A DNA stretch of 64,000 bases, taken from the NCBI GenBank assembly GCA_010909165.1, contig MU008160.1, positions 806,001 to 870,000 on the forward strand. The letters are read 5' to 3'. Shown here in pieces: positions 3,788 through 31,080 of the stretch. Below the pieces are notes generated by a model. The model worked only from the letters and a program-made list of their open reading frames with translations, did no database searches and was not told the origin of the DNA. The translations under genes and the position numbers were made by a program. Source of the DNA: Anthoceros angustus (Eukaryota; Plantae; Anthocerotophyta). Position 1 is the stretch's first letter. The number at the start of each line of letters is the position of its first letter.

Positions 3788-4194
3788 CTTTTGGCGTTGA
3801 TCTGAAGCGTCACAATTGTGTTGCTGACCCTTGGCTTGCTTGCGTCTCTTTGCATGAGATTGGTCCGTCAACTGACATGTCTGTTCATAAACCCAAGAAA
3901 TGTCGGTTAGAAACCCTAAGTAAAGAACTCAAACGATACTTTTGAAAGGTTGTGTCCCTTCTCACACTTACACCCTTTCACGTATCCAGGAAGTTGGATG
4001 AGGGAGCTAGCCTGTGAAGGATTGAATACACTTGTATCCATCCCCTCTCAGGTTGTCTCCCCCAACTAACCCCCTGGACACGCATCGTTAGTATCACATG
4101 AGCATCTTCTAGGAACAATTACATCGGAGCATAACTAACCTCGCTATTTTTCCTCTTGAACCATAGTTTTGAAAGGGACTTAGCTGGTTTACGC

Positions 4195-7100
4195 ATGTCC
4201 GATACCGAAAGTGCACATAGTGCATCTGACATCAGCCTAGGTGCAGTCTTAGATCCATTAGATCGTAGCTCTACCTCGTCGGAGGGGGAAGAGGACCTGC
4301 AGGCTGCTAATATATCCAATTTCTGGAATTTTCTGCCAATAGTACCTGTCACAAGTACACAAACCATGGCTACAGGTCCCTCTTTCACATCAGAATTGAA
4401 AGAGAAGGATAGGTTTAATGGGAAACTGTACCATGTGTGGAAGGTACGCATGAAAGCTCTCCTGATAGCTAGGGGAGTCTGGAGTGTTGTGGGTGGAGTT
4501 TTCCAGAGCCTAGCTCTCAAACCGGTACCCAAGCTGATATAGATAAGTGGACAGCTCACAATGAAGTTGCTGTTGCTGTCATTATCAATGGCTTGGATAC
4601 CCTTCTTGTTCCTGATGTGGACTACCTGAACAAGGGCATCGAGATCTGGAATCAGCTCGAGAAAACCTATCAGGTCACTAATATCATGACCAAATGTGTT
4701 GTGTGGCAAGAGTTTTATGCTCTTAGGATGAAAGACGGAGAAAATGTGGGCGGATTTACCAGTAAATTTCGTCACCTCCGTGCTCAGCTTGCTTCCTACA
4801 ACTACAAGATTGAGGAGGAACACGCTGTGGTTCAGCTGTTGAGCAGCTTGCCCGCCTCACTCCAACAGTTTGTCAATTCCTACAATGGTCCTTTGTGTAC
4901 CTCACAGGCTGCTGTTACTGCCGGTAATGCAAGCACCCTCACTGACGACATAGTGGCGGCGTTGCATCAGGAGGAGCAGAGCCGGTTGTTTTCTACAACA
5001 AACACAAAGACCAAGGCTGACGAGTGTTAGTGGCTAAGGTCAGACCCAACAAATCGAAGGGGAAACCCACCACTAACACAGGTCACGATACGTCCACAAA
5101 AAGGACTGGCAATTGCAATTGGTGTGGAGCTCCCGGCCATTGGGCATGGGATTGTCGCAAGAAAAAGGCCGGGGAGCCCCAACGCCAAAAACAACCGCCA
5201 AAGGTGGCGTGAAGGAGAAAGTTGACAATTCAAAAGATACTGTGAAGATTCTCACTGTCTGCCTGACCAGCACGTTGCATGATGCTGGAGAGTGGTATCT
5301 CGATTCCGGAGCTACCACTCACATATGCAACGACAAGAATTTGTTCTCCAAGTTGACCCTGAGTCACATGAAGGACAAAGTGCTGTTAGGGGACGAAAGG
5401 AGTGACACCAGCCTTCGAGTTGAGGGACATGGCAGATGTACCTTCTTTTTCAATGACGGCTCCAGAGCAAGATATCGAGGGAGTGCTATATGTGCCGGAT
5501 ATGGCGAAGAACCTCTTGTCGATGAGTAAGCTCATGCAGATGCGCATGTATGAGATGCGTATGGTTGATGATGCCTGCTGCTTCTATAGAAAATCTTCAC
5601 CTAACATCTGCGCATTTAGAGGTGTCCTCGATCATGACCTGTACAGGCTAGAGCTGAAGTGTTCTTCTGCGTCCACAAGCCATGCAGCGTACACGGTCAA
5701 CATGAATGCTAGTCAGCTTGCATCTTTGTGGCATGCTCGCCTAGGGCATGCTAACCGCAATAAACTGATTGACATGTCCAACCTCGGCTGTCATAGGGAG
5801 CCCTTACCTAGTTGTTTTAAAGAGTTGCCCGTATGTGAGGCATGTATTCTTGCAAAACAGAAGGAGCTTCCTTTCCCGAAAACTGCACATAGAGCCACAC
5901 GAGTTTTAGAGCTTGTACATGCAGATATTTCAGGAAAAATCCATACACCCTCTTTAGGAGGAGCCCTCTATTACCTGACTTTGACAGATGACTTTAGCCG
6001 GTACTCTTGGACCTTCCCCATGCACCTGAAAAGTGACACCGTTAGTTACTTTAAGGACTGGTTACCCACAGCACAACGTCAGTCCGGTTGTACGCTGAAA
6101 ATCCTTCGCAGCGATAATGGCACTGAATTTGTTAACCATGAGTTCGATGAGTACTTATCTGAGCAGGGTATCCAGCGGCAGCTAATTGTTCCTTATACCC
6201 AACAGCAGAATGGTGTAGCTGAGCGCAAAAACCAGACCTTGCTAGGGATGACTAGGAGCATGCGCTCTGGGAATCTGGGCAGGTCTACCTCAGGAATACG
6301 GGGCAGAGGCAGTGGTCACTGCCACGTACATCTTGAATCGAGTGCTGACCAGTTCTGTTAAAGGGAAGACACCATTTGAAGTATTCTGGCATAGAAAACC
6401 CAGTCTGCTTCACTTGCGTGTTTTCGGCTCCAAGGCTTTTGCATATATCCCTGCACCAAAGAGGAAGAAGTTAGAGAATCGAGCTCGTAGACTGATCTTT
6501 ATCGGCTACAGTGAAAATGTGAAGGCCTATAAGCTGTATGACCCTGATACGACAGACATTGTCCTTGCACGGAGTGTTACCTTCCTAGAGGCTATCAATC
6601 TTGTCACAACCGACCCCCAGCAGGCTTCATTTTCAGAGGGAGATTCTGGTGAGGAGGCACCGGATACTGTCACCTTCCCGGCTGATGACACACAACCCCC
6701 AGCAATTGTTCCTCCAGCGCCAGCAGCTCCCCATCCTCCAGTTGCCCCTGCAGCAGACCAGGGTGACATCCTTCATTACGATCCTCCCTCGGATCTTGAA
6801 GACCCCGCTTACGAGGACGCATCGACCGGATCCCTGATGGCCCGCCGATCTTGTTACGATGATGTTTCGATCGATCTGCCAGGAGCTCGCCTCGCTGCGC
6901 TTGTCAACACGTCATGTGCCACCTCCGATCAATGGCGTGAGCCGTTACACGCCTCGTGGATTTTCACACCTGCTGACATGGAGCCACTGTTGATATTCTT
7001 CCTGCAGAGGAACCTTCTTCCTACCAAGCAGCACTTGATGGCCCCGATTGCTCCAAATGGCAGGCAGCAGTGGAGGAGGAGTATCAGTCTCTTCTTAAAA

Positions 7101-8357
7101 ACAAGACTTGGACACTTGCTGACCTACCACTAGGGCGTAAAGCCATCTCGTGCAAATGGGTTTTCAAATTGAAGCTGAATGCCAAAGGGGAAATTGCCCG
7201 ATACAAAGCCAGGCTTGTGGCTAGGGGCTTTACCCAAGTGGAGGGTCTATCGTGGAAACTTTTTCACCTGTCCGTTCGCCTATTCGCTCCCGGCCCTCGC
7301 TGCAGAGCTCGATCTTGATCTCCAGCAAATGGACGTATGCACTGCATTCTTGTATGGGGATCTTGATGAGGACCTGTACATGTGCCAACCAGAGGGCTAT
7401 CAGGATCCAGAAACCCTAACAAAGTCCTAAAATTATTAAAGTGCATTTATGGACTTAAGCAGAGCGGGAGGGTATGGTATATTACCATGCATGTTTACCT
7501 CCTTAGCATCTCTTTTGTGCAGAGCACAGCAGATTCCAATGTATACAGGCTGAGCAGAGGAACCGATTTTGTCGTGCTTGCCCTGTATGTGGATGATGTT
7601 ATCCTCGCAACTAACGACGTTGTTAGAAAGGTAAAGCACATGCTCAGCACAAAGTTTGACATGAAAGACATTGGGGAGCTGAAATATTGCCTAGGAGTAA
7701 AGATTATTAGGGTCAGATCCGAAGGCCTACTCATCATATCGCTAAATATATAAATGATATTTTGAAATTTAAGTTGGATGAGGCTAGGCCCGCTACAACA
7801 CCCTACTCCACAAGGATGAAACTCACCGCCTTCATTGCCCACACCGAGGAAGAGTCCCGCTGAGCATGCGTACCTTATATGCTGCTGGGAGCCCTGATAT
7901 TTGCTAATCGACACGCCCGACATTCTGCATTCCGTTAGCACAAGATTCAGCCTCGGAAAACCCCGCGTAATGCATTGGTCACCGTTAAGAGAATCTTCGA
8001 TATCTCAAAGGCATCATTATGGGCTCACATGTAGGGAGCGGAAAACAAAAGCTTACCTTGACAGCCACCGAGGACCGGCATCCGAGTGATTCGAGGAAGA
8101 GCTTATCCACTTATTGTTTTTTGCTCGCCTCTGTTGCAGTCAATTGGTCGTGTAAGAAACAATCTTCTATAGCCCTGTCTTCCACAGAGGCGGAATACAA
8201 ATCACTGACAGATGCATCTAAAGAGGCAGAGTGGGAGAGGAGCTTCCTACATGACCTGGATCAAGCACAAGAAGGACCTACCTCAATATTGTGTGACAAC
8301 ATGTCAGCCCTGGCCCTAGTAGCAAATCCCAGATTCCACGCCCGCACTAAACACATT
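4195..8357 (+). pseudogene. gag-pol: Copia gag-pol polyprotein, copy 1 (frameshifted; RNase H cut after RTKHI)
   Basis: FNGKLYHVWKVRMKALL (gag N-term), CNWCGAPGHWAWDC (zinc knuckle), WYLDSGATTHIC (protease), LWHARLGH, LRSDNGTEF and QQNGVAERKN (integrase), KARLVARGF, QMDVCTAFLYG and LYVDD (RT), EAEY and CDN (RNase H). Confidence 0.95.
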
Positions 8358-9190
8358 CCCTACTAGAAAAGGCAGCCTATGTTACGTGTTATTGCAATTT
8401 CATGTAACACTTCCAGATTGCAACATGTTATTTAGGCTTGGTATTAAGATTGACACTATTCCTTCTCACACACCATCTTAACATGAACCTCGCTCTCTCA
8501 TCACCTCACCCTCCTAAGTACAACATCCCTCTGCTAGCATTGTTTATGATTTCAAACATATACAATGAAAACTTGCTTATGTTATAGTCCTTTGTTACAA
8601 TTTCATGTAACACTTTCCATGTGGTACACCCAAAAGTTAGGTGGCTTGGTGTTAAGTTTGTGATTTTCCCTCCACCTTCTCTCACCATCTTAACAACATG
8701 CAAGTGGTCTCTTGACCTTACACCTCGCCATTAAGAGCTTGTCATCAAGTTTGTTGGTTTGGTGTTAAGTTTGTGATTTTGTTTTCCACTTTCTCTTACC
8801 ATCTTAACAACATGCTCTTGGTCTCACCTTTCACCTCACACTCCTAGTTAATGCTGGATGATGACACCCATTTCTTTATTGTTTCCTCTTTGTGTTGCCA
8901 TATGATTGTGACAATGAGCTCCCTCTCCCACCGTATTTTATTCTTGCCTTCTTGCTTTTCCTACATAGCAATTACCAAGAACTCTATCTCTCCTCGTAGG
9001 TATCATTCTTTCCATCTTCCCTCTTCAATGCACCCTATGTCCACACCGGTTTTCTTTTCAAGCCCCATATACACAAACCCTTGTTATCGCTAATTATGTA
9101 TAGTAGGATTCTACATTATTTATATGTCCATTTATATATACGGTTGGCGCCGATGTATTCGTGATAATCCTACATACATGACATGAACGT
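8358..9190 (+). mobile_element. Left arm only of the CACTA-type element (duplicate of 35561-36392)
   Basis: ATT followed by CCCTACTAGAAAAGGCAGCCTATGTTAC and subterminal repeats; homology stops near 9190. Confidence 0.9.
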
Positions 9191-10968
9191 ATATATACCT
9201 TCCCTTGTTGTGAGTCAACATCAGCATAGATGCTCTCCCGCTGTTGTGAGGCACCACACCGAGCATAGATGTGCAGGCTGCAGTGTGTAAGACATTGAAA
9301 TGTGACGGAAGCAATGAGGGCCACATGTTTGAACACATGAGTGAGAGCAAGACACATGTAATGTGTTGAGAACAAAGTTGGATTTTTCCAACTTATCGTT
9401 AAAATTGGTAATGAACTCAAAACAGCAAACCCCTCATGCTCTAAGTTAAAGGGATTATGTGCAGACGCATCTGTGCATGCAATGAATTTACATTCTAGAA
9501 ATCTCATTGAGATTATCAAAGCTGAGTTTGTTTAAGATTGAATTACGCTACAATTCTATGGAGATTATCAAAGTTTCGATTTTGTTAAAGATCGTGTATA
9601 AAGTTCACCACAATTCATTGAGAGTGTTACAATTAAAACCCTACTAAGGAGTTTTAGTAATCTAGAGTCAAACACTACAGGAGTTTACGATGACACATGG
9701 TTTTCAAATGCTGATAATGAGCAAGAAATAGATATGGATAAATCTAACTCTAATGGAATGCAATATGAAAGGTAGTTACGGTGGTCATCAAGTCGAGAAG
9801 AGGCAATAAGCCTTCTTATATAATCAAAGAAGGACATGGACAAACTTCATGCCCTATAAGACTACTTGGGTGGAAAACTCAAGGGAGAGTGAGAAATTGA
9901 AAAGCTTGAAGAACGTGGAGGATTATCTGTTTGAAAGATTATTAGCCAAAGTGGAAAAGGTAAAATCAAAGTGTTAAAAGTTGGTGCTAAATTACCTACC
10001 AAAGACATGCCATTTCGAATTGCATAGCGCTGTGGGCACGTTGTCCTTTCGAGAAATGCGCTCGGCTCTCATCAACAAAATTCGCTTGTGTTGGTAGGCA
10101 AGGAGGATCGATGTGAAGCTCCCGTGGAGCAGAGCGCTCAGCTCATCCAAAAAATGCAAATTTTGGTAGGCATGTTGGAGGATCGAGATGTGAAGCTTGC
10201 CATCGAATGGATGTAAGATACTTTTATGCAGCCTGAGCCCTGTGATTCCAGGGACACTACCACAATGCATGAGGTAAACTAACGAAGGTAAAGCGTGGTT
10301 TCTTGTCATAATTGCACATAGCAATCCCAGCAAATTACACTTAGCGACATTGAACAGCCCATCCCAGCACTGATCCAGGCATGGGGTGCTTAATCCCCGG
10401 AGGTCTTAGAAAGAGTAGATATTAGCAACACCCAACTGCTGGAGCACTAGCACAAAATGACGGGTTTTGCTACGCCCGCTTGCTCTTCACTGACGCCTGC
10501 TTGCCCTTCACTTTGTTAGCCTCTGCTTGCTTTACTGGTCAGGACCCAAACGCGTCTTGCGGGCGAATCACCGCTGGGATGGGGACAGCCGTTAAGCGTC
10601 TGATGTTTCAGAGGAATGTTCCCACGCTCTGTCTCCACTGCTCCAAAGGCCAGCCGCCGGGGCCTGATTGGTCTCAGCTGGCACGAGCTAGAACTCCATT
10701 GGCCCACCGAGAGTGAGCCAGAGTTCCAACTCTGTACACAGGTGGCCCACCAGTCTGAGGGATCCTGGAGGAATGGGTGCAAAGACTGATCCTGCCGATC
10801 TTTATCCCGTTGCAGACGCTCCGACATAAAAGATCACAGCCAAATTGCCTAATGTTGTCGTTTCAATGTTCGCTTGTCGAATGCGGAGAGGGTCAGTGCT
10901 CTTTGTCATACTTCCTGTTGAATGAGTCACCATACATGCCAGTTCACCTTCGGCAGACTGGCAATTCT

Positions 10969-13471
10969 TCACGGTCGACCCTTAACTGCAACAACCAGCT
11001 GCAAAATCGATGCACACGGTACCCATCCTCACAACAATGTCTCTCTGTTCAAGCCTTGACATGATCTCCGTGGAACTGTGGCAGTCACTGCACATGCGTA
11101 GATTCTTCGTTACCACCAGAGGTGTCCACTGGAGTGTTCAAGAGACCAAACGCCAGAGCTAGCTTCTCAGCATGCCCACAAAGCACATCTTCCTTTTCCT
11201 TCTCACACAGTGGCTTCAACACCAACTTGTGTGAGGTACATGGCCTCCTTCCTGCTTCAGACGTGCATTCTTCTCTACCTTGAGCGCAACATCCTCTCTT
11301 TCTCTCCCACCAAAATGTATGTACCTTATTCACCTCAATGCTCGCCACTGCAGGTTTCTTGTTAGCTCCTGCTGTTCTCTGTGTTTCAATCCTGTCTACA
11401 TCGTCCACCTACCTGCATCTGCTAGGCATTGGCCATGAGCACATATGCAGGCCTCTGAGGTCCAGCCTAACAGCTTTCAAAACACCGCCGCCTCTATATC
11501 CCTGACTTTTGCAGGCATTCAACAAAGACGTCAACCCACAACATTACTTTGGCCTCATGATAATAGCATTCTCTGCCTCATCTAAATGGCCTGCACGCCC
11601 AAGAAGATCAATCATGCAAGTAATGCTCAATAGTAGGTTTGATGCCATGCTGTTCAGCCATGGAATCAAAGTGCTGCGACCCTCATGGACCAGTCCCTCA
11701 TGACTGCATGCTAAAAGGCAAGTAAAAGTAGCCATCAGGCTGAATACCGGCAACTAACATCTCCTCAAACAAGCTAGTGCCTTGTGACCTTCATCACAAG
11801 CACCATACCCAGATATCAGGGCATTCCATGTCACCACATCCTTTGTGGCCAAGCTGTCAAAACCTGGCGTGCATCTTCCAGTTCACCACATTTTGCATAC
11901 ATGTCCACCAGGCAGTTGCCCAACACTACGTTATCCAGCAGTCCTCTTCAACAATCAGAGTGCAGCTGCCTGCCCTTCTGTAAGGCACCAGTGCTTGCAC
12001 AGGCCTTCAGAAGGCAAGCAAAAGTAACATGGTTAGCCAAATCAGGCCTCCTGCTCCATTTGTCCATACAGAACAAGCGCCTCTTGGCGAGTCCTTGCTG
12101 CATACCCAGCAATCAGCATTCCATGTCACCACATCCTTTGTGGCCAGCTGTCAAAAACCTGGCGTGCATCTCCAGTTCACCACATTTTGCATACATGTCC
12201 ACCAGGCAGTTGCCCACCAGTTATCCAGCAGTCCTCTTCACAATCTGTGAGTGCAGCTGCCTGCCCTTCTGTAAGGCACCAGTGCTTGCACAGGCCTTCA
12301 GAAGGCAAGCAAAAGTAACATGGTTAGCCACAACAGGCCCCTTGCTCCATTTGTCCATACAGAACAAGCGCCTCTTGGCTGCCCTTGCTGTGCATACCCA
12401 GCAATCAGGGCATTCCATGTCACCACATCCTTTGTGGCCATGCTGTCAAAACCTGGCGTGCATCTTCAGTTCGCCACATTTTGCATACATGTCCACCAGG
12501 CAGTTGCCAACAAACAAGAGGAATGCCACTGTGCAACACATCACAGTGCACTTTTCTGCCAGATTCCAAGTCGCGGCAAATGCACAAGCTTGAAGGGCAG
12601 CTACAAAGACGTGAGCATCCGCCTTCACTCCTGACCTACGCATCTCATGGTACAGTTGTATGGCCTCTTAGGTTTCCCATGTTTAGCATGTGAGATTATG
12701 GAAAACCACATGAAGGCATCTGGTTTGTCCACCCTGGTGAGCACATCCATGGCCTCCTCTAGCCTACCTCCAGATGCATACATGCGCAAGATATGATTCC
12801 CCAAGTATGCATTCGAATCGTACCCAAGTTTGACAGCCAGATCATGAACTCGTCGCCCCATAACCAGATCCTTCTTAGCTGCACACAGTTTTAGCACAGT
12901 GTAAAACAGAGACTGAGAAATGGCAGATTCTGTCTGCGCCAGAGATTCCAGGGCTTCAACGGCCTCAGAAAGCTTCCCCTGCTGACATAACACAGTCACG
13001 GTTCCAGCCGTGACGACGCCCATTTCCGATCCTGCACGCCTCCCAGGTTCAGGCTTATCCGGAGCTCGACTTGGAAGAGGCACCATGACCCATCTGCATA
13101 TCCAAAGAAACGAGCTGCTCATCAACCCAAGCTGGACATGCTGTTTAACCACAGGACCTCGCCGGACCCTTACGCCGGAAGTCAGGCGAACGGGAGCTCT
13201 TATCTCGTCTGTTGTCCCACCACATGGTAGGGTCCAGAAAAATTGTTGCCACAAGTGCTCCTGCTCCTGGCAACGACCATCGCTGGAAAACCCGTCACCC
13301 ACACATTTTCTCGGAAGTGGAAGTGCTGGGCCCTTACACTGCTGCACCTGGAGGCTTGGTTGTTTGCCAGGGTTGACTCCTCTGAGATGAGGGTGAGCGG
13401 GAGCTCCTCGTAGAATCCCTGTACACACACCAATTTGTTGGGTCCACAACGGGTCCGCCACACAGTGCCAT
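10969..13471 (-). CDS. PPR-A: PLS-class PPR protein with E-DYW:KP domain ending GRP; frameshifts may be sequencing errors
   Basis: N-terminal extension (putative transit peptide), then P/L/S motifs (DVVTWNALIAGY, VTFACLLKACASTGAL, GNCLVDMYAKCG), LLGRAGHLDEAE, NKKPAVASIEV, HAEKLALAFG, CSDCH and ...KGRP stop (tca at 10969-10971). Start codon inferred from paralog alignment. Confidence 0.9.
11822..12500 (-). repeat. Near-identical S-P-L triplet repeats of about 295 bp within PPR-A (equivalents in B and D)
   Basis: cattccatgtcaccacatcctttgtggcc...ttttgcatacatgtccaccaggcagttgcc recurs at about 11822, 12117 and 12412. Confidence 0.9.
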
Positions 13472-13938
13472 CCTTCAGGGACTGCTGTCGGAGATGAGGC
13501 TAACAACAAACATGGCAGATGCCCAGGTACTGCATGGCCACACCACCTGAAGAAAAGTGCATGCGGTTTACTGCATTTTGGCCAAACCTGTCTCGAGATT
13601 TGGTCAGCCCAGCCCTGTGGAGGCTGGGTGACATCGAGGAACAGTCGTCCAAAGCCAAAAGAATCCAGCCAAGTTGTCGAAGGCTAGTAGGGAAGATGTC
13701 ACTTGGATGCAGTCCCCAGGTCGAAAACCAGTCCGTGGGACTGAGAGATGATGTACATATGTGCCGGTCAAAATGACACCCTGTAATAAATGCAGGACGT
13801 GCATACCATGTATGGAAGGAAGGTGTTTGGAGAGCTCATGCCTTCTGGCTGAGAGTGTGAGTGGCCAGAGAATGAGCGCGGATTCAGCCATGCCCATCAG
13901 TGGTTGTCCGCCTCATCTTCCGACAGCGGTGTCTGAAC

Positions 13939-16310
13939 ATGGCCACAGTTTGGCAACGGATTGTCGTGGACCCAACAAATTGGTGACTGTGCAGGATTCT
14001 ACAGAGAGCTCCAGCTCTGGACCTGGAAACAACCAACCTCCAGGTGCTGCAGTGTAAGGAACCCAGCACCCAAGTTTGAGAAAATGTGTGGGGAAAGATT
14101 TTCCAGGGATGGTCGCCAGGAGCAGGAGCATCTTGTGGAAACATTTTTTCTGACCCTAGGTGGTGGGACAACAGACGAGATAAGAAGAGCACCCTGACTT
14201 CCGGCGTAAGAGGTCTGCCGGGAGGTCCTCTGGTTAAACGTATATGGCCAGCTTGGTGATGAGCAGTCCTGATACGCAGATGGGTCATGGTGCTCCTCCA
14301 AGTCGAGCTGTCCGGATAAGCGGAGCTCAGGCCAGCTCATGTCTGGCAGACAGACTGTTCTATTTCTTCGTCTCTGCTGTTGATGCAAAACTGTGTGAAA
14401 GAAGGATTTGCTGTGGGGACGAGTTCATGATCTCATTGTCAAACTTGGGTGCGAGTCGATGCATTCTTGGGAACCATCTTCTGCGCATGTATGCATGTGA
14501 GGTAGGCTACAGGAGGCCATGGATGTGTTCACCAGGGTGGCACCAGATGCCTTCATGTGGTTCCATCTGCATATGCTAAACATGGGAAACCAATGGGCCA
14601 TACAACTTTACCATCAGATGCGTAGGTCAGGGTGAAGGCGGATGCTCACGTGTTTGCAGCTGCCTTCGCTTGTGCATTGGCTGCCGACTTGAATCTGGCA
14701 GAAGTGCACTGTGATGTGCACAGTGGCATTCTCAACTTGTTTGTTGGCACCTGCCTGGTGGACATGTATGCAAATGTGGTGAACTGAAAGATGCACGCCA
14801 GGTTTTGACAGCATGGCCATAAAGGATGTGGTGACATGGACGGCCCTGCTTGATGGGTATGCAGCAAGGGCTGGCCAAGAGGCGCTTTTCTGTATGGGCA
14901 AAATGGAGCAGAGAGGCTGATTTTGGCCAACATATTACTGCTTGCCTTTTGAAGGCCTGTGCAAGCACTGGTGCCTTACAGAGGGCAGGCAGCTGATGCA
15001 GATGTGAAAAGAGGACTGCTCAATCACGGTTGGCCTGCACATGTATGCTGTGAACTGAAGATGCACTGGTTTTTGAGAGCTGCACATGTGGTGACATGGA
15101 CGTGTGGCTGAAAAATGCACTGAAGATGCACGCCAGGTTTTGACAGCATGGCCACAAAGGATGTGGTGACATGGACTGCCCTGATTGCTGGGTATGCAAC
15201 AGGCTCGAAGAGGCACTTCTTGTATGGACAAATGGAGCAGGAGGGCCTGTGGCTGACCATGTACTTTGCTCCCTTCTGAAGGCCTGTGCAAGCACTGGTG
15301 CCTTACAGAAGGGCAGCTGCACTCACAGATTGTGGAAAGAGGACTGCTGATAACATGTGGTTGGCACTGCCTGGTGGACATGTATGCAAAATGTGGTGTG
15401 GAATGCACGCCAGGTTTTGACAGCTTGGCCACAAAAGATGTGGTGACATGGAATGCCCTGATATCTGGGTATGGTACTTGGATGATGGTCACAGGCACTA
15501 GCTTGTTTTGAGGAGATGTTAGTTGCCGGTATTCAGCCTGATGCTACTTTACTTGCCTTTAGCATGCAGTCATGAGGGACTGGTACGAGGGTCGCAAGCA
15601 CTTTGATTCCATGGCTGAACAGCATGGCATCAACCTAATGTTGAGCATTACATTGCATGATTGATCTTCTTGGCGTGGGCCATTTAGATGAGGCAGAGAT
15701 GCTATTATCATGTGAGGCCAAAGTATGTTGGGGTTGATGTCTTTGCTGAATGCCTGCAAAAGTCACGGGATATAGAGAGGGCAAGGTGTTTTGAAAGCCT
15801 TTTGTTCTGCTGGACCTCCAGGCGTCAGCGTATGTGCTCATGGCCAATGCCTATGCAGATGCAGGTAGGTGGACCGATGTAGACAGGATTGAAACACAGA
15901 GAATGCGAGCAGGAGCTAACAAACAGCCTGCAGTGGCAAGCATTGAGGTGAATAAGCAGGTACATACATTCCTGGTGGGAGAAAGAAGAGAGGATATTGC
16001 GCTTAAGGTAGACAGCACGAATGTTCAACTGAAGCAGGAAGGAGGCCACCCCACACAAAGTTGGTGTTGAAGCCACTGTCGAGAAGGAAAAGGAAGATGC
16101 TTGTGGGCATGCTGAGAAGCTAGCTCTGGCGTTTGGTCTGTTGAACACCTGAGTGGACACCTCTGGTGGTAACAAAGAATCTACGCATGTGCAGTGACTG
16201 CCACAGTTCCACGGAGATCATGTCAAGGCTTGAAAAGAGAGACATTGTTGTAAGGATGGTATCGTGTGCATCGATTTGCAGCTGGTTGCAGTTGCAAGGG
16301 TCGACCGTGA
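13939..16310 (+). CDS. PPR-B: PLS-class PPR-DYW:KP-type protein ending GRP; heavily frameshifted as assembled
   Basis: Homologous to PPR-A from leader to stop; NKQPAVASIEV, HAEKLALAFG, CSDCH, tgc agt tgc aag ggt cga ccg tga. Confidence 0.85.
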
Positions 16311-17312
16311 GAAGGAAGAAGAATAGCCATGGCCGAGTGAATTTTGCTTTCTTCTGAGTTGAATGTCGGTTAACTCCATCCCTGTGCTAACTGAGACAGC
16401 GAATAGGTCTTCCACATAAAACCTCCTGCGACAGGGAAGATGATCTGATTATGGAGCAGGATCGTGCTTGTGTACGTTCACCGTGACGCAAAGATAGCTT
16501 GAGCCCATTGTGCAATGCAGCCGTGATCATATGCAGGATAATTGAAGAAAGGGATGCTCATGACATCAATGGCAATGTCAGAGTTTTGCCCAGTCTGCCT
16601 GGCCTGAGCGCCCGATTTCCATGAGGAAACTTGTTTGTGCGCATGTTGTAGCCTTCTGCTGGTGTTGAGCTGCAGTTCCAGCCGAGCTGACCAGGAAGAC
16701 CGGTTTGTTGAATCCATGGACCCAAAACGTAACGTTAACCATCGAATTGAAATTTGTGAACGATACGTATCGTACACACATGATACAAGGGTGAATGATC
16801 AAATGAACGTTAACGAAAGAATCTGTACTGCCAGTGGCATGAGTTGGGCCTGTCCCGTCGATTGACATGAACCATCGAAGCATCTGGCTTTTTGAGTGAT
16901 GCGTCTAGGAGAAGCCCAGATTGCTTAGTTGCTTCAGTCGGTAGCTATTGCTGAGAAAGCTCCAGAGATTGTTCCGCAAGACAAGGCTTCAGTATGTGGA
17001 TTTACGGAGAAAGAACAAGAGAATTGTTCCTGGTGCCAAGCAAATCAGGTTCCTCATGAGTCCTGATGCTATGTTGACACTGGGGTTATTGATGCCAATA
17101 TCTCCACTTGCCGCAATGAAGAGAGGTCGCCGCACGTGCTGCAACCTGAGTTCTACCACCACAAGACTTAGCATGGCTGTTGCAGTGCATTTGGAAGGAA
17201 GGTACACACTGAAGATCTGTCCACCCAGAGAATTAGGTGAATCCTGCCACCAGTTCCACCTCCTGAAGAAGAATAAGAAGAAATTTGTTGTGTGCATCCT
17301 CCTGAGTGTCAC

Positions 17313-19315
17313 ATGGCCACATTGTGGCATGGAGCCCGTGGACCCAGCAAAAGGAGTGTACAGGATTCTAGAGACCTCCGCTCACCCACCTGGGAGTCAA
17401 CCGCTGAGACAATCAAGCCCAGGTGCGGCGTGATGTAAGGAACCCAGCACTTGTTTTGAGAAAAGCGTGGGTAGGATTTTCCATGGTCGTCGAAAGGAGG
17501 ATAATTTTTGGCTACAAATGTTGCTGGACCATGGCATGTGCTGGGACAACAGTCGATAGGAAGAGCTTCGGCTGACTTCCGGCGTAAGGGCTCTGGTCGC
17601 GGTCCTCTGGTTATGCTACCTGGATAAGCAGCTGTTCTTTGATATGCAGATATATGGTGAGTCTCCTTCGAACTCGAGCTCATGAGCCTGACCTGGCAGT
17701 CGCAGGATCAAATTGGCATCGTATGGCCAACTGTGATCACGTTATGCCAGCAGAAGCTTACTGAGGCAGCCTGGAATCTCTGGCTCAGAGACTGTCCTAT
17801 TTGTCTCTGTTTTATACTGTGATAAACTGTGTACAGCTAAGAAGGATTTGTTCTGGACGAGTTCATGAGCTCACCACCAAACTTGGCTATGAGTCGAATA
17901 CATACAGGGAACCATCTGTTGCATGTATGCAAGTGGAGGTAGGCTACAGGAGGCTATGTTCACCAGGGTACGCAAACCAGATGCCTTCATGTGGTCTTCC
18001 ATAATCTCCGCATGTTAAACATGGGAAACCTAATGAGCCAGATCTGCACCATGAGATGCGTAGGTCAGGTGTGAAAGCGGATGCTCACGTTTTACAGCCT
18101 TCAAGCTTGTGCAGGCCAGACCTGAATCTGGCAGAGAAATGTGATGTGTGTACAGTGGCATTTCGCTCCTTGTTTGTTGGCAGCCTGGTACATGCAAAAT
18201 GTATAACTGGAAGCTGCACGTCAGGTTTGACAAAGCCACAAAAATGTCATGATGCAATGCCCTCACAGCTGGGTATGCAAATAGTGGCGACCTGAAAGGT
18301 GCACGAGGGTCTTGACATCTCACAAAGGATGTGGTAACATGGACAGCCCTGATTGCTGGGTATGTAGCATGGCCTTGGCCAAGAGGCGCTTGTTCTGTAC
18401 AGAGAAATGGAAAAGGAGGGCATCATTGTGGCTGACCTGAAGATTCTGCTGCCTTCTGAAGGCCTGTGGAATGCTGGGCCCTACAGAAGGGCAGGCAGCT
18501 GCACTCGCAGATTGTGGAAAGAGGACTGCTAGATAACCCATGGTTGGTACCTGCCTGGTAGACATGTATGCAAAATAGAACTGGCAGATGCACGCACATT
18601 TTTAACAGCTTATTAAAGGATGTTGTGTCATGGACACACTGATATCTGTTGGGTATGGTAATTTGTGATGAGGTCACAACGAGCTGCTTAGGATGCTGGT
18701 TACGGTATTCAGCCTGACGGTTACATTTACTTGTTTTGTTGCTTGCAAATGAGGGACTGCATGAAGGTAAGCACTTTGATTCCATGTTTGCAGCACAGCA
18801 TCCAACCTACTGTTGAGCATACAATCTGATTGATCTTCTTGGTCAGGCCATTTAGACAGAAATGCTTTTATGATCATAATGAGTCTGCTGATGCCTACCA
18901 GCACTTTTACAACATGTCACCTATGCAGATGCATAGGTGGACCATGTAGAGAGTTGAAGCACAGAGAATATCAGGATTGAAGAAACCCAGAAGCAGGCAT
19001 TGAGGAATAGCAGGTGCATACACATGTGGAGAAAGGACAGATGACATTCAAAGGTAGAGAGCACAAACGCTGAAGGAGGAAAGGCTACATGCCCAGACAA
19101 AGTTGGTGTTGACTGCTGGACAAAAGCATGAGCATGCTGAGAAGCTAGCCATGGCTGGTCTCCTGAACACCCAGGGACACCTTGATGGTAACAAGAATCC
19201 TTTGTGCAGTGACTGCCACAGTTCCACGGAGATTATGTCAAGTTGAAAGGAGAAGTTGTGAAGGGATGTATCTGTACATCATTTGCATGTTGTTGCAGTT
19301 GTAGGTCGCCCGTGA
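17313..19315 (+). CDS. PPR-C: shorter PPR-DYW:KP paralog (about one triplet fewer); the most degraded, may be a pseudogene
   Basis: Same leader (atggccaca..gtggacccagc), WTALIAGY, KKP, HAEKLA, CSDCH and a GRP-like end ggtcgcccgtga. Confidence 0.75.
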
Positions 19316-19641
19316 GATGAAAAGTGACAGTGCTAAAGTGAGCATTACTTCTCAAGAGGTGAGCATGCCTGCTTAATTCCATCCTGTGTAAACTGTGATG
19401 AGACAACGATTCTCACAGTTGTAGGAAATCTGGGTCTTTATCTCTTCCCTGTATGTACACAAGTTCCGTGAGGAAAGGCAGCCCAGGACTGATGAAGTGA
19501 GAATGCAGCAGGATGGTTGATATCCAATATTCGTCCAAGAAATGGATGGAGATGCTTCATGGCGGCATGTCAAGAAGCCTCACCCAACTATGATTGCCAC
19601 CCTGGCAAAATATGGACACCTGCTTGGGTAATGAAGTGAAT

Positions 19642-19750
19642 CCAGAGTGTACCCAACAACCATGGTGGCAAATATTGGTGGCCTGCCTGTAACGGAAGGA
19701 ACCAGAGAGAGGTACCCAACAACCATGGTGGCAAATATTCAGGCCTGCTT
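19642..19750 (+). repeat. Two-copy direct repeat, period about 63 bp
   Basis: tacccaacaaccatggtggcaaatatt at 19650 and 19713. Confidence 0.85.
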
Positions 19751-20846
19751 GGGAAACTAAATTCACTGGGAGTACTTGAGAACGACACCCGGGCACTGGC
19801 GGTCCGCTAGGTGTATTAACAGATTGGGGCATTTTAGTAACGACTGCCTGTTGGTCAGTTAACGACGGTCAATTATATTTTACATTCTGAATTATAATAA
19901 GAATGGCCTAAATAAGTATATCTGAATAATAAATAATTTTAATCTTACTGGTTATCCATTAAAGCGTAAGCTTTCGAAGAGGTTGTAATTATACATATTT
20001 ATGTTAAACCTTCGAGGCCCAGTCATAAAGATGGGTCATGCTTGGCTGTACATGAACACCGAGAATGTTTAGATAAGGTCCGGTGTGCCAGCCTAAGCTA
20101 CATATGTACGGAAATTAGCACAAAAGGCTTGAACCGCTGAGGCGGCCAGGTTGGCTTTCTCCTCGATTTTGTGAATCCCAACCTCAGAACCTGGCTGAGC
20201 CTGCGAGGACTCGGCTTGCATGCGTGCCAGACTGATTCCAACGTGTATGCAATGACTGGAGCATACCCATGAATAGAAGAAGAAGAGAATTTATTGAAGT
20301 CACAAGGAGGATTTCCGTCATGGGACTTGGTACTTAACAACCATGGTGTGCCTAAGCTACTTGCTGCACCAAGGGCATCCACCCTTTAGGCACCCCAGCG
20401 ATCCAAGCTCAGGATGCTTAATCACGGCGTTTTATAAATGTGTCCATTTGCCCAGCCATTTGGACAAGGGTAAGCAAGTGCCCTAGATTGTCACCGCGAT
20501 TCACGCGCCGATCATACATGCTGGAGGAACAAATGCAGGGCTTAGCAAAATTGCCGGACAGGTCCTATACCCGACATGCCAGAGGCCATTGAGCATCCTG
20601 TCCCTCGTTCACAGTTCCAAATGTCCGGATATCACATCATGGCTTGCCTTTCGATCAGCTCCGAGCTGCCTTTCCTCATGATACTGTTACACAGAAGATT
20701 CATTAAACCAGATTTTCCCGTCACAGAAAAGGTGACAATCCGTTTCAGCGATGCCGCTGTCTCAAACAGGATGAAAGTGCATACTCACGTCTTGAAAGAC
20801 AGCAACATTCTCTCCGTCCAAACTTGAGCACTGGCACAACGTCTTC

Positions 20847-23351
20847 TCACGGACGGCCTTTACAACTGCAACAACCCAGCTGCGAATCGATGCACACGGT
20901 ACCCATCCCTTACAACAATGTCTCTGTTCAAGCCTTGACATGATCTCCGTGGAACTGTGGCAGTCACTGCACATGCGTAGATTCTTCGTTACCACCAGAG
21001 GTGTCCCACCGGAGTGTTCAAGAGACCAAACGCCAGAGCTAGCTTCTCAGCATGCCCACAAAGCATCTTCCTTTTCCTTCTCAGACAGTGGCTTCAACAC
21101 CAACTTTGTGTGAGGCATGTGGCCCCTTCCTGCTTCAGTGCATTCGTGCTCTCTACCTTAGCGCAATATCCTCTCTTCTCCCACCAGAAATATGTACCTG
21201 CTTCACCTCAATGGTCGCCACTGCAGGTTTCTTGTTAGCTCCTGCTACCTTCTCTGTGTTTCAATCCTGTCTACATCGGTCCACCTACCTGCATCTGCAT
21301 AGGCATTGGCCATGAGCACATAGGCGGTGCCTTGAGGGTCCAGCCTAACAATGCTTTCAAAACACCACATGCCCTCTCTATATCCCCGTGACTTTTGCAG
21401 GCATTCAACAAAGACGTCAAGCCCACAACATTACCCTCACATGATATAGCATCTGCCTCATCTAAATGGCCTGCACGCCCAAGAAGATCAATCATGCAAT
21501 TGTAATGCTCAGTAGGTTTGATGCCATGCTGTTCAGCCATGGAATCAAAGTGCTTGACCCTCATGACCAGTCCTCATGACTGCATGCTACAAAAGGCAAG
21601 TAAAAGTAGCATCATCAGGCTGAACACCGGCAACTAACATCTCCTCAAAACAAGCTAGTGCCTTGTGACCTTCATCACAAGCACCATACCCAGATATCAG
21701 GGCGTCCATGTCACCACATCTGGCCATGTCAAAAACCTGGCGTGCATCTTCCAGTTCACCACATTTTGCATACATGTCCACCAGGCAGTTGCCCAACACT
21801 ACGTTATCCAGCAGTCCTCTCACAATCTGTGAGTGCAGCTGCCTGCCCTTCTGTAAGGCACCAGTGCTTGCACAGGCCTTCAGAAGGCAAGCAAAAGTAA
21901 CATCAGCCAAAATCAGGCCCTCCTGCTCCATTTGTCCATACAGAACAAGCGCCTCTCCGAGTCCTTGCTGTGCATACCCAGCAATCAGCATTCCATGTCA
22001 CCACATCCTTTTGGCCAAGCTGTCAAAAACCTGGCGTGCATCTTCCAGTTCACCACATTTTGCATACATGTCCACCAGGCAGTGCCACCACACGTCATCC
22101 AGCAGTCCTCTTTCAACAATCTGTGAGTGCAGCTGCCTGCCCTTCTGTAAGGCACCAGTGCTTGCACAGGCCTTCAGAAGGCAAGCAAAAGTGGTCAGCC
22201 AAAATCAGGCCCTCCTGCTCCATTTGTCTACACAGAACAAGCGCCTCTGGCCCAAACCCTTGCTGTGCATACCCAAAATCAGGGCATTCCATGTCACCAC
22301 ATCCTTTGTGGCTGTGTCAAAAACCTGGCGTGCATCTTTCAGTTCGCCACATTTTGCATACATGTCCACCAGGCAGTTGCCAACAAACAAGTTATTAGGA
22401 ATGCCACTGCAACACATCACAGTGCACTTTTCTGCCAGATTCCAAGTCGGCGGCAAATGCATGCTTGAAGGGCAGCTACAAAGACGTGAGCATCCGCCTT
22501 CACTCCTGACCTACGCATCTCATGGTACAGTTGTATGGCCTCCTTAGGTTTCCCATGCTTAGCATGCAGAGATTATGGAAAACCACATGAAGGCATCTGG
22601 TTGCCCACCCTGGTGAACACATCCATGGCCTCCTGCAGCCTCCACATGCATACATGCGCAAGATATGGTTCCCCAAGTATGCATTCGACTCGTACCCAAG
22701 TTTGACAGTGAGATCATGAACTCGTCGCCCCACAACCAATCCTTCTTAGCTGCACACAGTTTTAGCACAGTGTAAAACAGAGACTGAGAAAGCAGAGTCT
22801 GTCTGCGCCAGAGATTCCAGGGCTCCAACGGCCTCAGAAAGCTTCCCTGCTGACATAACACGGTTCCAGCCGTTACGACGCCCATTTCCAACCCTGCACG
22901 TCTGCCAGGCTCACGCTTATCCGGAGAGCTCGACTTGGAAGGAGAGGCACCATAACCCATCTGCATATTCAAAGAAACCAGCTGTTCATCCACCCAAGCT
23001 GGCTTGAACAAGTTGTTTAAGCAGAGGACCTCGCCGCCTGACCCCTTACAGCGGAAGTCAGGCCAACGCGAGCTCTTCTTACCTCGCCTGCTGTCCCACC
23101 ATATGGTAGGGTCCAGAAAATTGTTGCCACAAGTGCTCCTGCTGGTGACGACCATCGCTCGACAATCCTTCCCCACCGAGACATTTTCTCACAAGTGGAT
23201 GGGTTCCTTACACTGCTGAACCTGCAGCCGGAGGCGGCTTGTTTGCCGGTTGACTCCCTAAGGTGAGGTGAGCGGGAGCTCGTCCTAGCATCCTTGTACA
23301 CTGACCAGTTTGTTGGGTCCACAACGAATCTGGTTGCCATACTGTGGCCAT
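20847..23351 (-). CDS. PPR-D: PLS-class PPR-DYW:KP protein ending GRP; frameshifts may be sequencing errors
   Basis: ORF-track fragments LIAGYAQQGLGEAL...VQPDDATFTCLL, HYNCMIDLLGRAGHLDEA and KNLRMCSDCHSSTEIMSRL; NKKPAVATIEV; CSCKGRP stop. Confidence 0.9.
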
Positions 23352-26558: not shown

Positions 26559-29500
26559 ACCTTGTTTTTGATTCTGAGCATACCACTTGTTGCCTATAAA
26601 GGCATCAAATCCATAATGCATTTTCCACTCTAGATTATCTAATCTTCACATATGCACTTAGGAGATTTGTATTTCGGCGAATTGGATCATGCTCAATTTC
26701 ATATTTATATGATGCATAATTTGTGCATCCAATCCTTATCAATTCACCATGGATTCCACCAATCGTAGACAAGGATATTGGAGAAAATTCAAGACGCAAA
26801 ACATGAGAAACAATGTAAGGACCACCCATTAAACCAAAAGAAATTGGGTTCACGTGTTGAAGAAATAGAAGAAAACACGAATATTTGAAGCGGCCGAATA
26901 TAATGGGCCGCTTTAAAACCCGGGACCAATTTTAGATTCATTGTACAGTCCCAAAACCCATGATTCTTAATGTTCCTTGCCATGACGGAGTCTTGTTATC
27001 GCCTCGCTGCAATGGTCCGCTTTGGACAAAATTTTGCCTCTAGGTATGGTGCAGGTGGGCGCCGCATGCCGCCGCCTAAAAGAAACTCAACTTAACTAAT
27101 ATAAAAACTATAATTGATCTCGAACTCGCGATTCTATTAGCCGAGTTTTTACCACTTTACCAACTTTAGGAGACAACAAAATTTTATGATATAAATATAT
27201 ATCAATGAAGGTGCCAATATGCTAGCACCCTATGCTCTTATGCTCCTCCATAGGGCGCCTACGGCCCCTTAAATAGGTTTTCTATGAGCCGGTGCTGCTC
27301 CGCATTAACACTAGGGCTTACAACCACTTGTCCCGCACCCATGCACATTATGACTTACATATATTTTCGCTTGCGCAAGAGAATGAGAAAACACACCACC
27401 TTTCACACTTCCGATCACGACGCATTTTTGGTCGCTCACAAAGATGGTGTCCAACATACAAAAACGATTCAATTGCTATGACCTCAGAGAAAGATAGTCG
27501 CGCTACACGGAGCTCGAGAATAGGGAAGAAACTTGGCCGTGTCATGTCTCTTCTCCTCCGATTCAAGTGAAATTTGAGATCATGAATATTAGGGCATGGG
27601 TAATTTCAAACGCGGTTTAGAAAACCTTTGAAATTTAAAATAATTTCCATGATTTTGAGTTCAAGTGTACAAATTATTAGAATAAGGGAATTTAAACCAA
27701 ACCAATCATCTATCACTTTTACAACACAAACTATGCTCTCATTTCGATACATATTACCTATTCCTACACAACATGAAAAGTTAAAAGAAGACTTGAACCA
27801 AGACCTCTTCCAACTTTCAAAGCTTACCACTCCATTAACTTTCCCACACATAAATATTGGAAGCAAAGTATATGTTGAATGAGGGCGCATGCCCTTCTCA
27901 TTCTTCTTCTTCTTCATCATGCCCTTATGCTCCCCATGCTCCTTGTTTTTGATAGCCCGAGAAGCCATCACGGTTCGTGGTTTCTTAGCCACTAGCCTAG
28001 GGTGTCTAACCGATGTTGAGCAACCGAGAAGCCATTACGGCTCGTAGTTTCGCGAAGGAGTGTTTGTTGATCCAAGATTGCCAAAGGTTATGAATCTTGG
28101 CGGCATGCCGCCCAATGCACGTAGCCTTTGAGCATGATTGGTGCGATGCGCCTAGGTGTGTCACTTACGGTGTTTAGGGTCTTCACCCGCTATTGTACAC
28201 AATGACATCGACCGTTCCGGATTGGATGTATAGCACGCATATAGAAATAGCCGATGCATTCCCTTCGCCGCGCAGATGGTCGCCCATGTTCATCATCGTT
28301 GTTTAACGAATGGCATGCACTAACGACATGGGCATCATTTCCATTGAAAACAATGGTCTACCTATAGGTCAAACCTTCGCTACCATTGTAAGCCGCTAAA
28401 GATATAAAATTTCACGACACCCTAATTGTGTGCCTTCTTGCAGGTATGCTCAAATACACATTTCAATGCCCATCGAAAACCCCTGCTTCATGATATATTC
28501 ACGCCAAAAGCCGCTTGATGTATATTCAGCCGCTTCAAATATTATGCCGTTAGAAGTTTCAAAACAGGTTTGTAATTCCATTGGATCAATTTTGATTAAA
28601 TCAACTTATCAAGCAAATCTAATCAAAAGTGCTAGACAACGCTTGCTTACATCTTTTAGTCTAGTGCAAGTTGAGTACATCGAATTAGCTCTTCAACATA
28701 TTCCTAATCCAAGTGCTGGCCCTATATAGCTCCTAATTTTAACACAAATCAGCATAGCATCAATTCCATCAAATCAAATATAAAACAAATTCAAGTTTTT
28801 CCTGAAGACAAATTTGCTTTACTAATAAGTGAAATTTGTGATCTTATGAGGGTGAGAGGGGAGGGCGAGGTGGGAAAGCCTTGGGTTTTGCTCTATCCTG
28901 CTACTACCGGGTATGTCTCGTATGGGTCCGACCAGAGTGGTGGCAAGGCTTGGCAGGTTACGAAGTGTACGCGGGAAGTACGATGCAAAGGGATGTAGTG
29001 GGACTGAGACCCAAGTTGAGGTGTGAGGGAGTGGATCTAGGAGAGGACGTGGCTCTAATGATGCGGAGGATTGTGGTGCATGCCACTGACGTGGGAGAGA
29101 GAGGGCTTAGGTGAGAAACTCCTCAAAAGGGTGAGCTCCTGAAACTCCACTACCGAGTACGGATCTTGGGGAAAAGGCTGCACGAGAGGTGTGGGAAGTA
29201 GGTTGGGGATGGCCTGAATTTGGGCAACGTGGCACCTTGGCTGTCATAACAATATTGTAGATTGTAAATGTGTCTCGGTGGATTAATGGAAGATGATGAA
29301 ATGTTTGTTGAGTCAGGAGTGAGTTGCTCTAGGCGAGAAACTCCCCAAAAGGGTGAGCTCCCAAAACTCCACTACTGAGTATAGATATGGAGGAAAAGGT
29401 TGCACGGGAAGGGGCACGGTGAGTGCTGAGTAGAGATTAGGGGTAATGTGTGTGCGAAAGTTGTCGGGCACTATGTGTGCAGAGAGTTATACGACATGGT

Positions 29501-30128
29501 ACGGCTTCACTAACCTCCTCTGGTTTGTGTCACCTTATGATGTAACTGCAGGTGTGAGCCACACCTGGAATGGTACATCGGTAATAACTCCAAAGACGCC
29601 CCTCACCTTGTCGACGACGTCCCTAGCGGCCCCCCTAAGGACGTCCTAGGAAACAACGTCGTGGGGTGTGTGATGGGAGGAGAGAGAGTAGTTAGAGAGG
29701 AGTCACCCCCTTCCCCTCCCTTAGGTTAGGAGCTGAGTAGATGTTGTGTGTGTGTGTATGTGCTTGAGATGGTTTGTTGATATTTTGCAGAGAATGGTCC
29801 ATAGTAGGCACAAAGTACGATCCCCTAGGAACGAATACTACAACAGAACATGGGGATCAATGTGACCCCACTATTGGGATCCAATTGGTGACTTCACATG
29901 GGAGAGCCCATCCACCAGAGGATGAGACCCCGAGAGTCGTGGCCAAAAAGAGCAACTAAGCTCCCCACCTGAAATCTCTTTTTGCACTAGCAAAATGGCC
30001 CTACCAGCCTAAATACCTAAATATTTAGTTAATTTCATTAATTATTTTTCTACATTAGTAACTACATGACTCATCGAGAAACAAATCTAATTATTATTAA
30101 GCGTAAGCAAGAAATGGCTCGGTAGATC

Positions 30129-30294
30129 TGTTGGAAATAAAGCCAACATTAAGTATAAGGGTTTCTTTAGGTTAAACATACGTGAACCATTTTTAGGGTT
30201 TAGTATATAAACAATACACACATACAATTTTGTAACCATTATTTCATTATTTGAAATCAAGCTTTGTCGAGCCAAACCGCCTCTCCAAATTACA
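30129..30294 (+). repeat. Copia 5' LTR, copy 2; PBS TGGTATCGAGC at 30295-30305
   Basis: Matches 2829-2996 apart from indels at the 3' end. Confidence 0.95.
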
Positions 30295-30334
30295 TGGTAT
30301 CGAGCCAAATGCTCTCTATTTTTCTCAAGACATA

Positions 30335-31080
30335 ATGCCTCGGGTAGATCCTGCGATCGACGTCAACAGAGGAGGCTACAAAACTCAAGTCGAGTCCTTG
30401 CTGCTAGCGTTTTGGATTTGTACGAGGCCAACTACCCCGACGCATGCCAGGTTGCTAGAAACTCGTGCAAGTTCCAGAGGCTGATTAGGCTGCGATTGAG
30501 AACCTCGTGGAGTAGATTCTCTCACCGGCCTCGGTGCATTGCTAGGAACCACCGATCCTCGCCACAACCATCGGGTCAATCAGCCGAAGGAGTCAACACT
30601 TTCAGCCTCTTCTCCTGACACCCCTGAATTTGGTCCTATTGCTGATTGGGAGTTGCGAGCCTTTGGAGAAGTCTGCAATCACCCAAATTACAAGAGGACG
30701 CTTAGGTGGCTGAAGGGAGAAACATCTGCAGAAGACGACGCAATTGCTGCAGAAAAATCTACTTCATACAAGAAACGAGTAGAGAAATTGGCTGCAGAAA
30801 AGCAAATTTCAGTTGAGGTTCCTGTTGGGACTTCCATTGAAAAACTCCTGTTCAATCAGCACATCTTGAGAGACGGTGTTGCTCGCCTGCAAGTCTGCAT
30901 TGACACACAAATTTCCAGAATTGATAGAAATATCTCGGAGATTGCTGGAATGATGCGTGCGATGGATCTTGGTCAAGGATTCTCCACAGAGTTCTTGCCA
31001 GCGAGCGGAGACTCCATCCTGTGACCTCGCTCACCGGCGGGAGCGCTGGAGATGCGAAATGGCGATGGATCGCATGACTT
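30335..31080 (+). CDS. Extra ORF upstream of gag, copy 2 (frameshifted)
   Basis: ORF-track peptides 30412-30618 and 30539-31024 match the copy-1 peptides. Confidence 0.6.

Follow-up and report, generated by a model that had tools for sequence, protein, structure and literature searches.

Four paralogous, intronless PPR genes lie within the 64-kb window, i.e., the whole stretch of DNA that was analyzed: copy A (10969..13471, minus strand), copy B (13939..16310, plus strand), copy C (17313..19315, plus strand), and copy D (20847..23351, minus strand). The limits of A, B, and D were set by their ATG and stop positions and by frameshift-aware alignment to the protein P0003; A is further supported by Pfam PPR and DYW_deaminase matches, and B has the same architecture as A. 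Copy D is the best preserved of the four, and copy C is the shortest and most divergent. The coordinates and the - + + - order in the earlier note agree with the motif positions found here, and its outer limits coincide with the stop codon of A (10969) and the ATG of D (23351). Based on self-BLAST, the nucleotide identity is 89% for A/D, 84.5% for A/B, 83% for B/D, and 72-76% for C versus the others, and no fifth copy was found elsewhere in the 64-kb window. A and B are divergently oriented, and the 467-nt spacer between them (13472..13938), which is near single-copy in public runs, may serve as a shared promoter region.

All copies have the same domain order, namely, an N-terminal PDF-like motif, a PLS-type PPR array, E1/E2, and a DYW domain. 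Proteins of the PLS class are defined by tandem P, L, and S motifs of ~35, 35-36, and 31 residues, followed by E1 and E2. A motif-by-motif alignment to P0003 resolved the order L-S-(P-L-S)x3-P2-L2-S2-E1-E2 in A, B, and D, and intact pieces matched Pfam PPR, PPR_1, and PPR_2. DYW deaminases are defined by an HxE...CxxC zinc-binding signature in a domain of ~133 aa, and PF14432 was matched with E=2e-7, above the curated cut-off. These Pfam searches found both PPR and DYW_deaminase domains in pieces. The PDF-like motif of D (WWDSRRGK..WPDFRCKG..EVLCLN..AWVDEQLVSL) was located by alignment to the N-terminus of P0003 at 22967..23132 on the minus strand; its counterparts are found in A (13100-13254), B (14133-14281), and C (17506-17671).

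The DYW:KP domains were delimited in A (10972..11360, minus strand; KKPAVA, HAEKLA, VTKNLRMCSDCH, HSSTEIMS, and a GRP terminus), B (15921..16307, plus strand; KQPAVA, HAEKLA, CSDCH, and GRP), and D (20850..21233, minus strand; KKPAVA, HAEKLA, VTKNLRMCSDCH, HSSTEIMS, and GRP). The KP box, K(K/Q)PAVA, occupies 11343-11357 in A, 15924-15938 in B, and 21216-21230 in D, and has a degenerate form (KKPRxAG) in C. All four copies have HAEKLA and CSDCH, and the replacement of HSE by HAE is a criterion of DYW:KP domains (PMC9478123). Each copy also ends with GRP and a stop codon (A, 10969-10980; B, 16299-16310; C, 19304-19315; D, 20847-20858) and has HSSTEIMS, in which a GRP-specific Glu replaces Lys103 of the PG domain. 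Lys88 is needed for U-to-C editing (PMC11845758, PMC9478123). Counting on P0003 according to the same two studies, we found that the active-site residues Lys88 and Met92 are both present in A, B, and D (VTKNLRMC), and that C has kept the Lys and not Met92. The motifs reported previously for this cluster (KP box, HAEKLA, CSDC, and GRP) were thus recovered in A, B, and D, and in C with a degenerate KP box, a copy that had already been flagged as less clear.

A quick IQ-TREE search with 84 DYW domains placed A, B, and D in one clade (SH-aLRT 99). This clade is nested within a GRP-ending clade that also contains P0003, P0046, P0048, and P0050 (support 96), which in turn is nested within a clade of HAE domains (96); the HSE/DYW clade is separate from the latter (99). 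The motifs and this tree both uphold the assignment to the GRP subgroup of DYW:KP proteins. The earlier note had named a grouping with canonical DYW:PG proteins as the outcome contrary to its assignment, and the domains of the window stand apart from that group. It had also given hornworts, ferns, and some lycophytes as the range of the subclass; for the GRP ending, this agrees with the literature for hornworts and not for ferns or lycophytes (PMC9478123). In a whole-library search, P0003 was the sole long, close GRP relative; it is an intact, intronless, GRP-ending protein. Over ~800 residues, its amino-acid identity is 57-60% to A, B, and D (60% to D) and 50% to C. The word-indexed search of public proteins with P0003 was dominated by generic PPR proteins of 31-55% identity, and that with the DYW piece of A found nothing at E <=1e-8.

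As assembled, none of the four copies is an open reading frame. On the frameshift-aware alignment to P0003, we counted 30, 39, 32, and 29 frameshifts in A, B, C, and D, respectively, with in-frame stops numbering 3 in A, 2+2 in B, 5+2 in C, and 0 in the aligned codons of D. These 29-39 breaks per copy are most likely, for the greater part, small-deletion errors of a noisy assembly rather than real mutations. This reading is supported by the similar indel density of unrelated transposons in the window and by the finding that the whole 64 kb contains a single ORF of 300 aa or more. Gap events account for 2.3-3.4% of aligned columns, and mismatches for 6-18%, in a 9-kb pair of transposons, a pair of LTRs, and three PPR pairs; in BLAST comparisons across the window, gap openings are about equal in number to mismatches. 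The frameshift counts are also alike despite the widely differing divergences of the copies, and the sisters A and D have four frameshift sites in common, versus 3.4 expected by chance. Inherited frameshifts, which would prove the breaks real, were accordingly rejected. Furthermore, the stops are far below the neutral expectation (observed versus expected: A, 1 and 4.1; D, 0 and 4.4, with 669 codons scored; B, 1 and 9.6; C, 4 and 13.2), and comparisons among the copies gave dN/dS values of 0.50-0.64 and an excess of changes at third positions. Homopolymer bias was considered as the cause of the indels and rejected, as the share of 1-nt indels that touch an identical base is only about one half, which is near chance.

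Public short-read data are consistent with this reading, since their contigs carry letters that are missing at break sites. In the contigs of four public runs, all 12 of the best-supported indels are letters absent from the window, and at least 8 of these 12 coincide with, or are only a few bases away from, inferred frameshift sites. Seven are located beside frameshifts of the protein alignment (11026, 11858, 12447, 13166, 13237, 14802, and 15766) and one at a 2-nt gap of A versus D (11472). Because the family is very multi-copy and these contigs are short and 90-95% alike, the missing letters reflect the family consensus and not this locus itself. Each run gave 10,000-41,000 short family contigs that aligned to A and B, and no close match to either copy was found among the longest contigs listed. 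The alignment of the sole locus-specific contig (X1, 617 nt), at 13645-14159, contains 7 mismatches and 47 gap letters; over this interval, the contig exceeds the window by 45 nt.

Taken together, we consider it fairly probable that the four copies are paralogous, intronless nuclear PLS-class PPR genes with a DYW:KP domain of the GRP subgroup, that most of their breaks are assembly errors, that selection, judging by the substitution record, maintained open frames in A, B, and D for most of the time over which they diverged, and that the family is very large, closely similar, and spread over the genome. Several findings count against this explanation. After frame correction, 2-4 in-frame stops are left in A and B; the indels show no concentration in homopolymers, and lengths of 5-7 nt occur among them; the public runs, including those flagged as possible RNA, yielded no RNA evidence for the copies; no near-identical protein was recovered from the public collection with the DYW piece; and, in the literature, U-to-C activity is reported for consensus-designed proteins only and for no natural GRP protein. 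In addition, the dN/dS among the copies is well above the values of 0.11-0.19 obtained versus P0003, which leaves room for relaxed constraint or partial decay.

The strongest alternative, which we regard as somewhat unlikely, is that the cluster is an array of true pseudogenes, i.e., four dead GRP-type PPR relics in a transposon-rich graveyard with frameshifts that are real small deletions. The 29-39 frameshifts in every copy as assembled, the raised dN/dS, and the neighboring transposons broken to the same degree would all fit this scenario, as would the lost conserved segments and the 5+2 stops of C. However, one indel per ~3 substitutions, near constant across divergences, fits no mutational decay known to us, and A and D do not share frameshifts beyond chance. 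The strong nonsense deficit, with no stop in the 669 scored codons of D, and the family contigs that carry absent letters exactly at the breaks also argue against decay of the whole array. For C, a pseudogene is probable from its sequence; 165 reference residues are unmatched, and conserved DYW segments are missing in addition to the frame breaks.

If the frames of the other copies are open, as in the assembly-error explanation favored above, family knowledge predicts how their products would act. The protein would enter the plastid or mitochondrion, its ~14 PPR motifs would read a short RNA stretch via residue 5 and the last residue of each motif, and the DYW:KP domain, with the zinc site HAE...CSDCH and Lys88, would change a uridine that lies closely downstream of the bound RNA into cytidine. 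In several P and S motifs, position 5 is occupied by T in B and by N in A and D. Because B differs from A and D at these RNA-recognition positions, A/D and B probably do not have one and the same target. New specificities, which had been proposed for this cluster, may arise there, on the basis of just these PPR-code differences between B and A/D. A bolder joint reading, which we hold to be doubtful, is that the cluster represents a functional group of U-to-C editors that diverged recently, in which new specificities would be generated by local duplication, duplication of internal P-L-S triplets, and changes at code positions (N to T), and in which all copies would have an N-terminal single-strand-binding module of the PDF type, as yet unreported for editing factors.

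Concerning the origin of the cluster, the window is rich in transposons, as the earlier note had described, and the cluster is flanked by two copies of one 9-kb element. Regarding its proposal of local amplification, a simple recent event of this kind is not supported: the closest pair, A/D, has B and C in between, the similarity starts at the ATG and ends near the stop codon, the 3' flanks being only weakly alike, and the family is massively multi-copy in the public runs. The copies could instead be retroposed or transposon-carried insertions that landed together rather than local DNA duplicates, which we judge to be quite unlikely. The lack of introns, the extent of similarity from the ATG to about the stop codon, and the position between the two 9-kb copies are in line with such insertions, and the PPR expansion in hornworts has been attributed mainly to dispersed duplication with retroposition (PMC13386178). 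However, the weak 3' flank similarity among B, C, and D is typical of old DNA-level duplicates, and four unrelated insertions in 12 kb are improbable unless the family targets such sites. Retroposition as such was rejected, because no poly(A) tract follows any of the four stop codons.

As for the direction of editing, the designer KP6 performs both U-to-C and C-to-U reactions, and single substitutions (Lys88, HAE to HSE, and others) can shift the direction (PMC9478123, PMC11845758). Given these results and the lack of a reported assay of natural GRP proteins in the literature examined, the genes might be intact without being dedicated U-to-C editors, acting instead in C-to-U editing, in both directions, or as RNA binders only, but this is highly improbable, as, in bacteria and human cells, the editing obtained with the GRP-based designers KP2 and KP3 was U-to-C, with no C-to-U editing (PMC9478123), and HAE, Lys88, Met92, and CxDCH are kept in A, B, and D.

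Earlier work has already described this kind of gene, the domain signature that marks it, and how abundant it is in hornwort-type genomes, and the cluster itself is therefore ordinary. With ~30 breaks per copy that are most likely sequencing errors, these are most likely ordinary family members viewed through a noisy assembly. To our knowledge, no enzymes other than DYW:KP proteins convert U to C in RNA. These proteins are under development as programmable base editors, and because few natural GRP-type genes have been sampled, intact sequences from this locus would enlarge the diversity available for design. Close paralogs with different code residues would also help in studying specificity change. 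The sequences of the locus become usable for such work only after polishing.

Among known systems, the copies are most like the hornwort GRP-type PPR-DYW:KP proteins (described in Anthoceros and the basis of designers KP2 and KP3; PMC9478123), with which they have in common the PLS-PPR array, E1/E2, KPAVA, HAE, CxDCH, Lys88, Met92, the Glu in place of the PG Lys103, the terminal GRP, and the placement in the GRP clade. They differ from the nearest intact GRP protein, P0003, in having ~60% identity and one extra P-L-S triplet, and from the known hornwort proteins of this type in that their frames are broken as assembled. The hornwort DRH-type and the fern and lycophyte DYW:KP proteins (designers KP1 and KP4-KP6) share the KP box, HAE, the architecture, and the HAE clade with the window copies, but their terminal triplets (DRH, DHH, DRP, and similar) retain the Asp, and they lie outside the GRP clade. 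The canonical PPR-DYW:PG C-to-U factors, such as OTP86 and PPR56, have the same PLS-E1-E2-DYW order, HxE...CxxC signature, and active-site lysine, whereas their PG box, HSE, and DYW terminus set them apart in a clade of their own (support 99).

A six-frame motif scan found one gene design present in four copies at 10969-23351, with start codons at 13471 (A, minus strand), 13939 (B, plus strand), 17313 (C, plus strand), and 23351 (D, minus strand). A and B lie head to head with a 467-nt spacer between them, and C and D lie tail to tail. All four copies have HAEKLA, CSDCH, and a GRP before the stop codon, and K(K/Q)PAVA is present in A, B, and D; stop-free pieces match PPR motifs and DYW_deaminase (Pfam). 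In self-BLAST, nucleotide identity is 89% between A (10969-13451) and D (20847-23326), 84.5% between A and B, 83% between B and D, and 72-76% between C and the other three. No fifth copy was found in the window by tblastn with an intact relative as query. The observation in the earlier note is confirmed, and the start and stop positions place its limits, 10969 and 23351, exactly at the stop codon of A and the ATG of D.

When the DYW piece of A was compared with 1.8 billion representative proteins, 29 matches were obtained. The best long match, P0003, is an intact protein of 753 aa with a C-terminal GGRP, and its gene, which is intronless, lies on a 9-kb contig from a public run. The DYW:KP subclass is told from the canonical DYW:PG by the KP box, HAE, and an altered terminal triplet, and the hornwort GRP subgroup is marked by the GRP ending and a Glu at Lys103 of PG domains (PMC9478123). 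U-to-C editing requires Lys88 (PMC11845758, PMC9478123). After frame correction, the DYW domains of A, B, and D read KKPAVA.IEV, then LCGHAEKLALAFGLLNTP.GTPLVVTKNLRMCSDCHSSTEIMSRLE.RDIVVRDGYRVHRFAAGCCSCKGRP, and Lys88 (positioned by counting on P0003) is the K of KNLRMC, followed by Met92. These features agree with the published DYW:KP and GRP-subgroup criteria (PMC9478123, PMC11845758). A phylogeny of 84 DYW domains, including four GRP-ending database proteins and 52 HSE domains (mostly DYW-ending), recovered A, B, and D as a clade (SH-aLRT 99) nested with the four GRP-ending proteins (support 96), within an HAE clade (96) that is apart from the 52 HSE domains (99). These copies do not group with PG proteins, and the assignment to DYW:KP claimed in the earlier note, together with that to the GRP subgroup, is supported. 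The GRP-based designers KP2 and KP3 have U-to-C editing activity and no C-to-U activity (PMC9478123). Given the family placement and this activity, candidate U-to-C editors is a fair label, by homology, for the window genes.

As assembled, all four copies are broken. Each copy was aligned twice in a frameshift-aware manner, to P0003 and then to P0003 with one P-L-S triplet doubled, and the breaks comprise 30 frameshifts and 3 in-frame stops in A, 39 and 2 in B (plus 2 stops in inserted codons), 32 and 5 in C (plus 2 in inserted codons), and 29 and none in D. Several independent features (indel rate, frameshift pattern, stop deficit, dN/dS, and missing letters) favor assembly noise over decay, and we consider noise the likely source of the breaks in A, B, and D. 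In all repeat pairs of the window, small indels occur about as often as mismatches, with BLAST giving 349 mismatches and 282 gap openings in the 9-kb transposon pair, and 104 and 105 in the LTR pair. In MAFFT alignments of these two pairs and three PPR pairs, gap events account for 2.3-3.4% of columns and mismatches for 6% to 18%. The transition fraction of the repeat pairs is only 0.4-0.6, and a single ORF in the transposon-rich 64-kb window reaches 300 aa. Together these traits are the signature of a deletion-prone assembly that has not been polished, and accurate reads are therefore needed for any call of a broken gene in the Anthoceros angustus genome.

Frameshift numbers are similar in all four copies though divergence varies greatly. 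The sisters A and D have 4 frameshift sites in common, compared with 3.4 expected by chance; no frameshift is inherited between them. With lineage-specific substitutions taken as neutral, stops observed in aligned codons were 1 vs. 4.1 expected in A, 0 vs. 4.4 in D, 1 vs. 9.6 in B, and 4 vs. 13.2 in C. Among copies, dN/dS is 0.50-0.64, with third-position changes in excess; that these values exceed those against P0003 (0.11-0.19) is a point against the noise reading. All 12 best-supported indels in contigs of four public runs are letters absent from the window, and at least 8 of them coincide with inferred frameshift sites or lie a few bases away: seven beside protein-alignment frameshifts (11026, 11858, 12447, 13166, 13237, 14802, and 15766), and that at 11472 at a 2-nt gap in A relative to D. 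Further points against the noise reading are that these contigs come from family members and not demonstrably from the A-D locus, and that the indels are not tied to homopolymers, some being 5-7 nt long.

In C, 165 residues of the alignment reference are unmatched, EKEDxLCG before HAE is missing, and the TPLVVTKNLRM segment is shortened. Because conserved stretches are missing in frame-independent ways and C has the most stops of the four copies, it is probably dead irrespective of polishing.

Similarity among copies starts at the ATG and stops approximately at the stop codon, with only weak 3' flank likeness among B, C, and D and no poly(A) tract. This pattern fits old DNA-level duplicates with conserved or homogenised ORFs better than fresh tandem copies or retrocopies. 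In the public runs X1, X3, X7, and X8, which bear the labels of three or more organisms, the gene bodies within 10900-16400 gather 10,000-41,000 short contigs per run, and their summed depth, which is not a copy number, exceeds that of the near single-copy A-B spacer by a factor of 10^3 to 10^4. One X1 contig matches this spacer with 7 mismatches and 47 gap letters. The depth shows that many near-identical relatives exist and that the family is very large. Hornworts have 1,583-2,308 PPR genes, and this growth was ascribed mostly to dispersed duplication (PMC13386178). The cluster is flanked on both sides by copies of an approximately 9.2-kb element (1-9197 and 27386-36407; about 90% identical, same orientation), the first of which may extend beyond the window start. 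A gypsy-type element has LTRs at 45199-46937 and 53702-55445 (approximately 83% identical by BLAST); since gap openings nearly equal mismatches in this pair, its apparent age is inflated by assembly noise.

Positions 5 and last of the PPR motifs are nearly alike in A and D, mostly N/D with U predicted, and in B position 5 is occupied by T in S1a, P1b, S1b, and P1b', with purines predicted. PPR-code residues next to frame breaks are uncertain, and the copies probably differ in target. In the frameshift-aware alignment, A, B, and D are 57-60% identical to P0003 at the amino acid level and C is 50% identical, and the layout is an N-terminal region, L-S-(P-L-S)x3-P2-L2-S2, E1, E2, and DYW. The N-terminal motif LW.QFF.D...WWD.RR.K....PDFR.KG..EVLWLN...AWVDEQLVSL is found in all four copies (A, 13100-13254; B, 14133-14281; C, 17506-17671; D, 22967-23132) and is common to P0003. 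Adjacent P-L-S triplets repeat with a 297-nt period in A (11804-12217 and 12101-12511) and D (21685-22093 and 21973-22388), and their DNA identity of 88-92% suggests a recent internal duplication or conversion. P0003 has one P-L-S triplet fewer than the window copies, a difference for which such a duplication or conversion would account.
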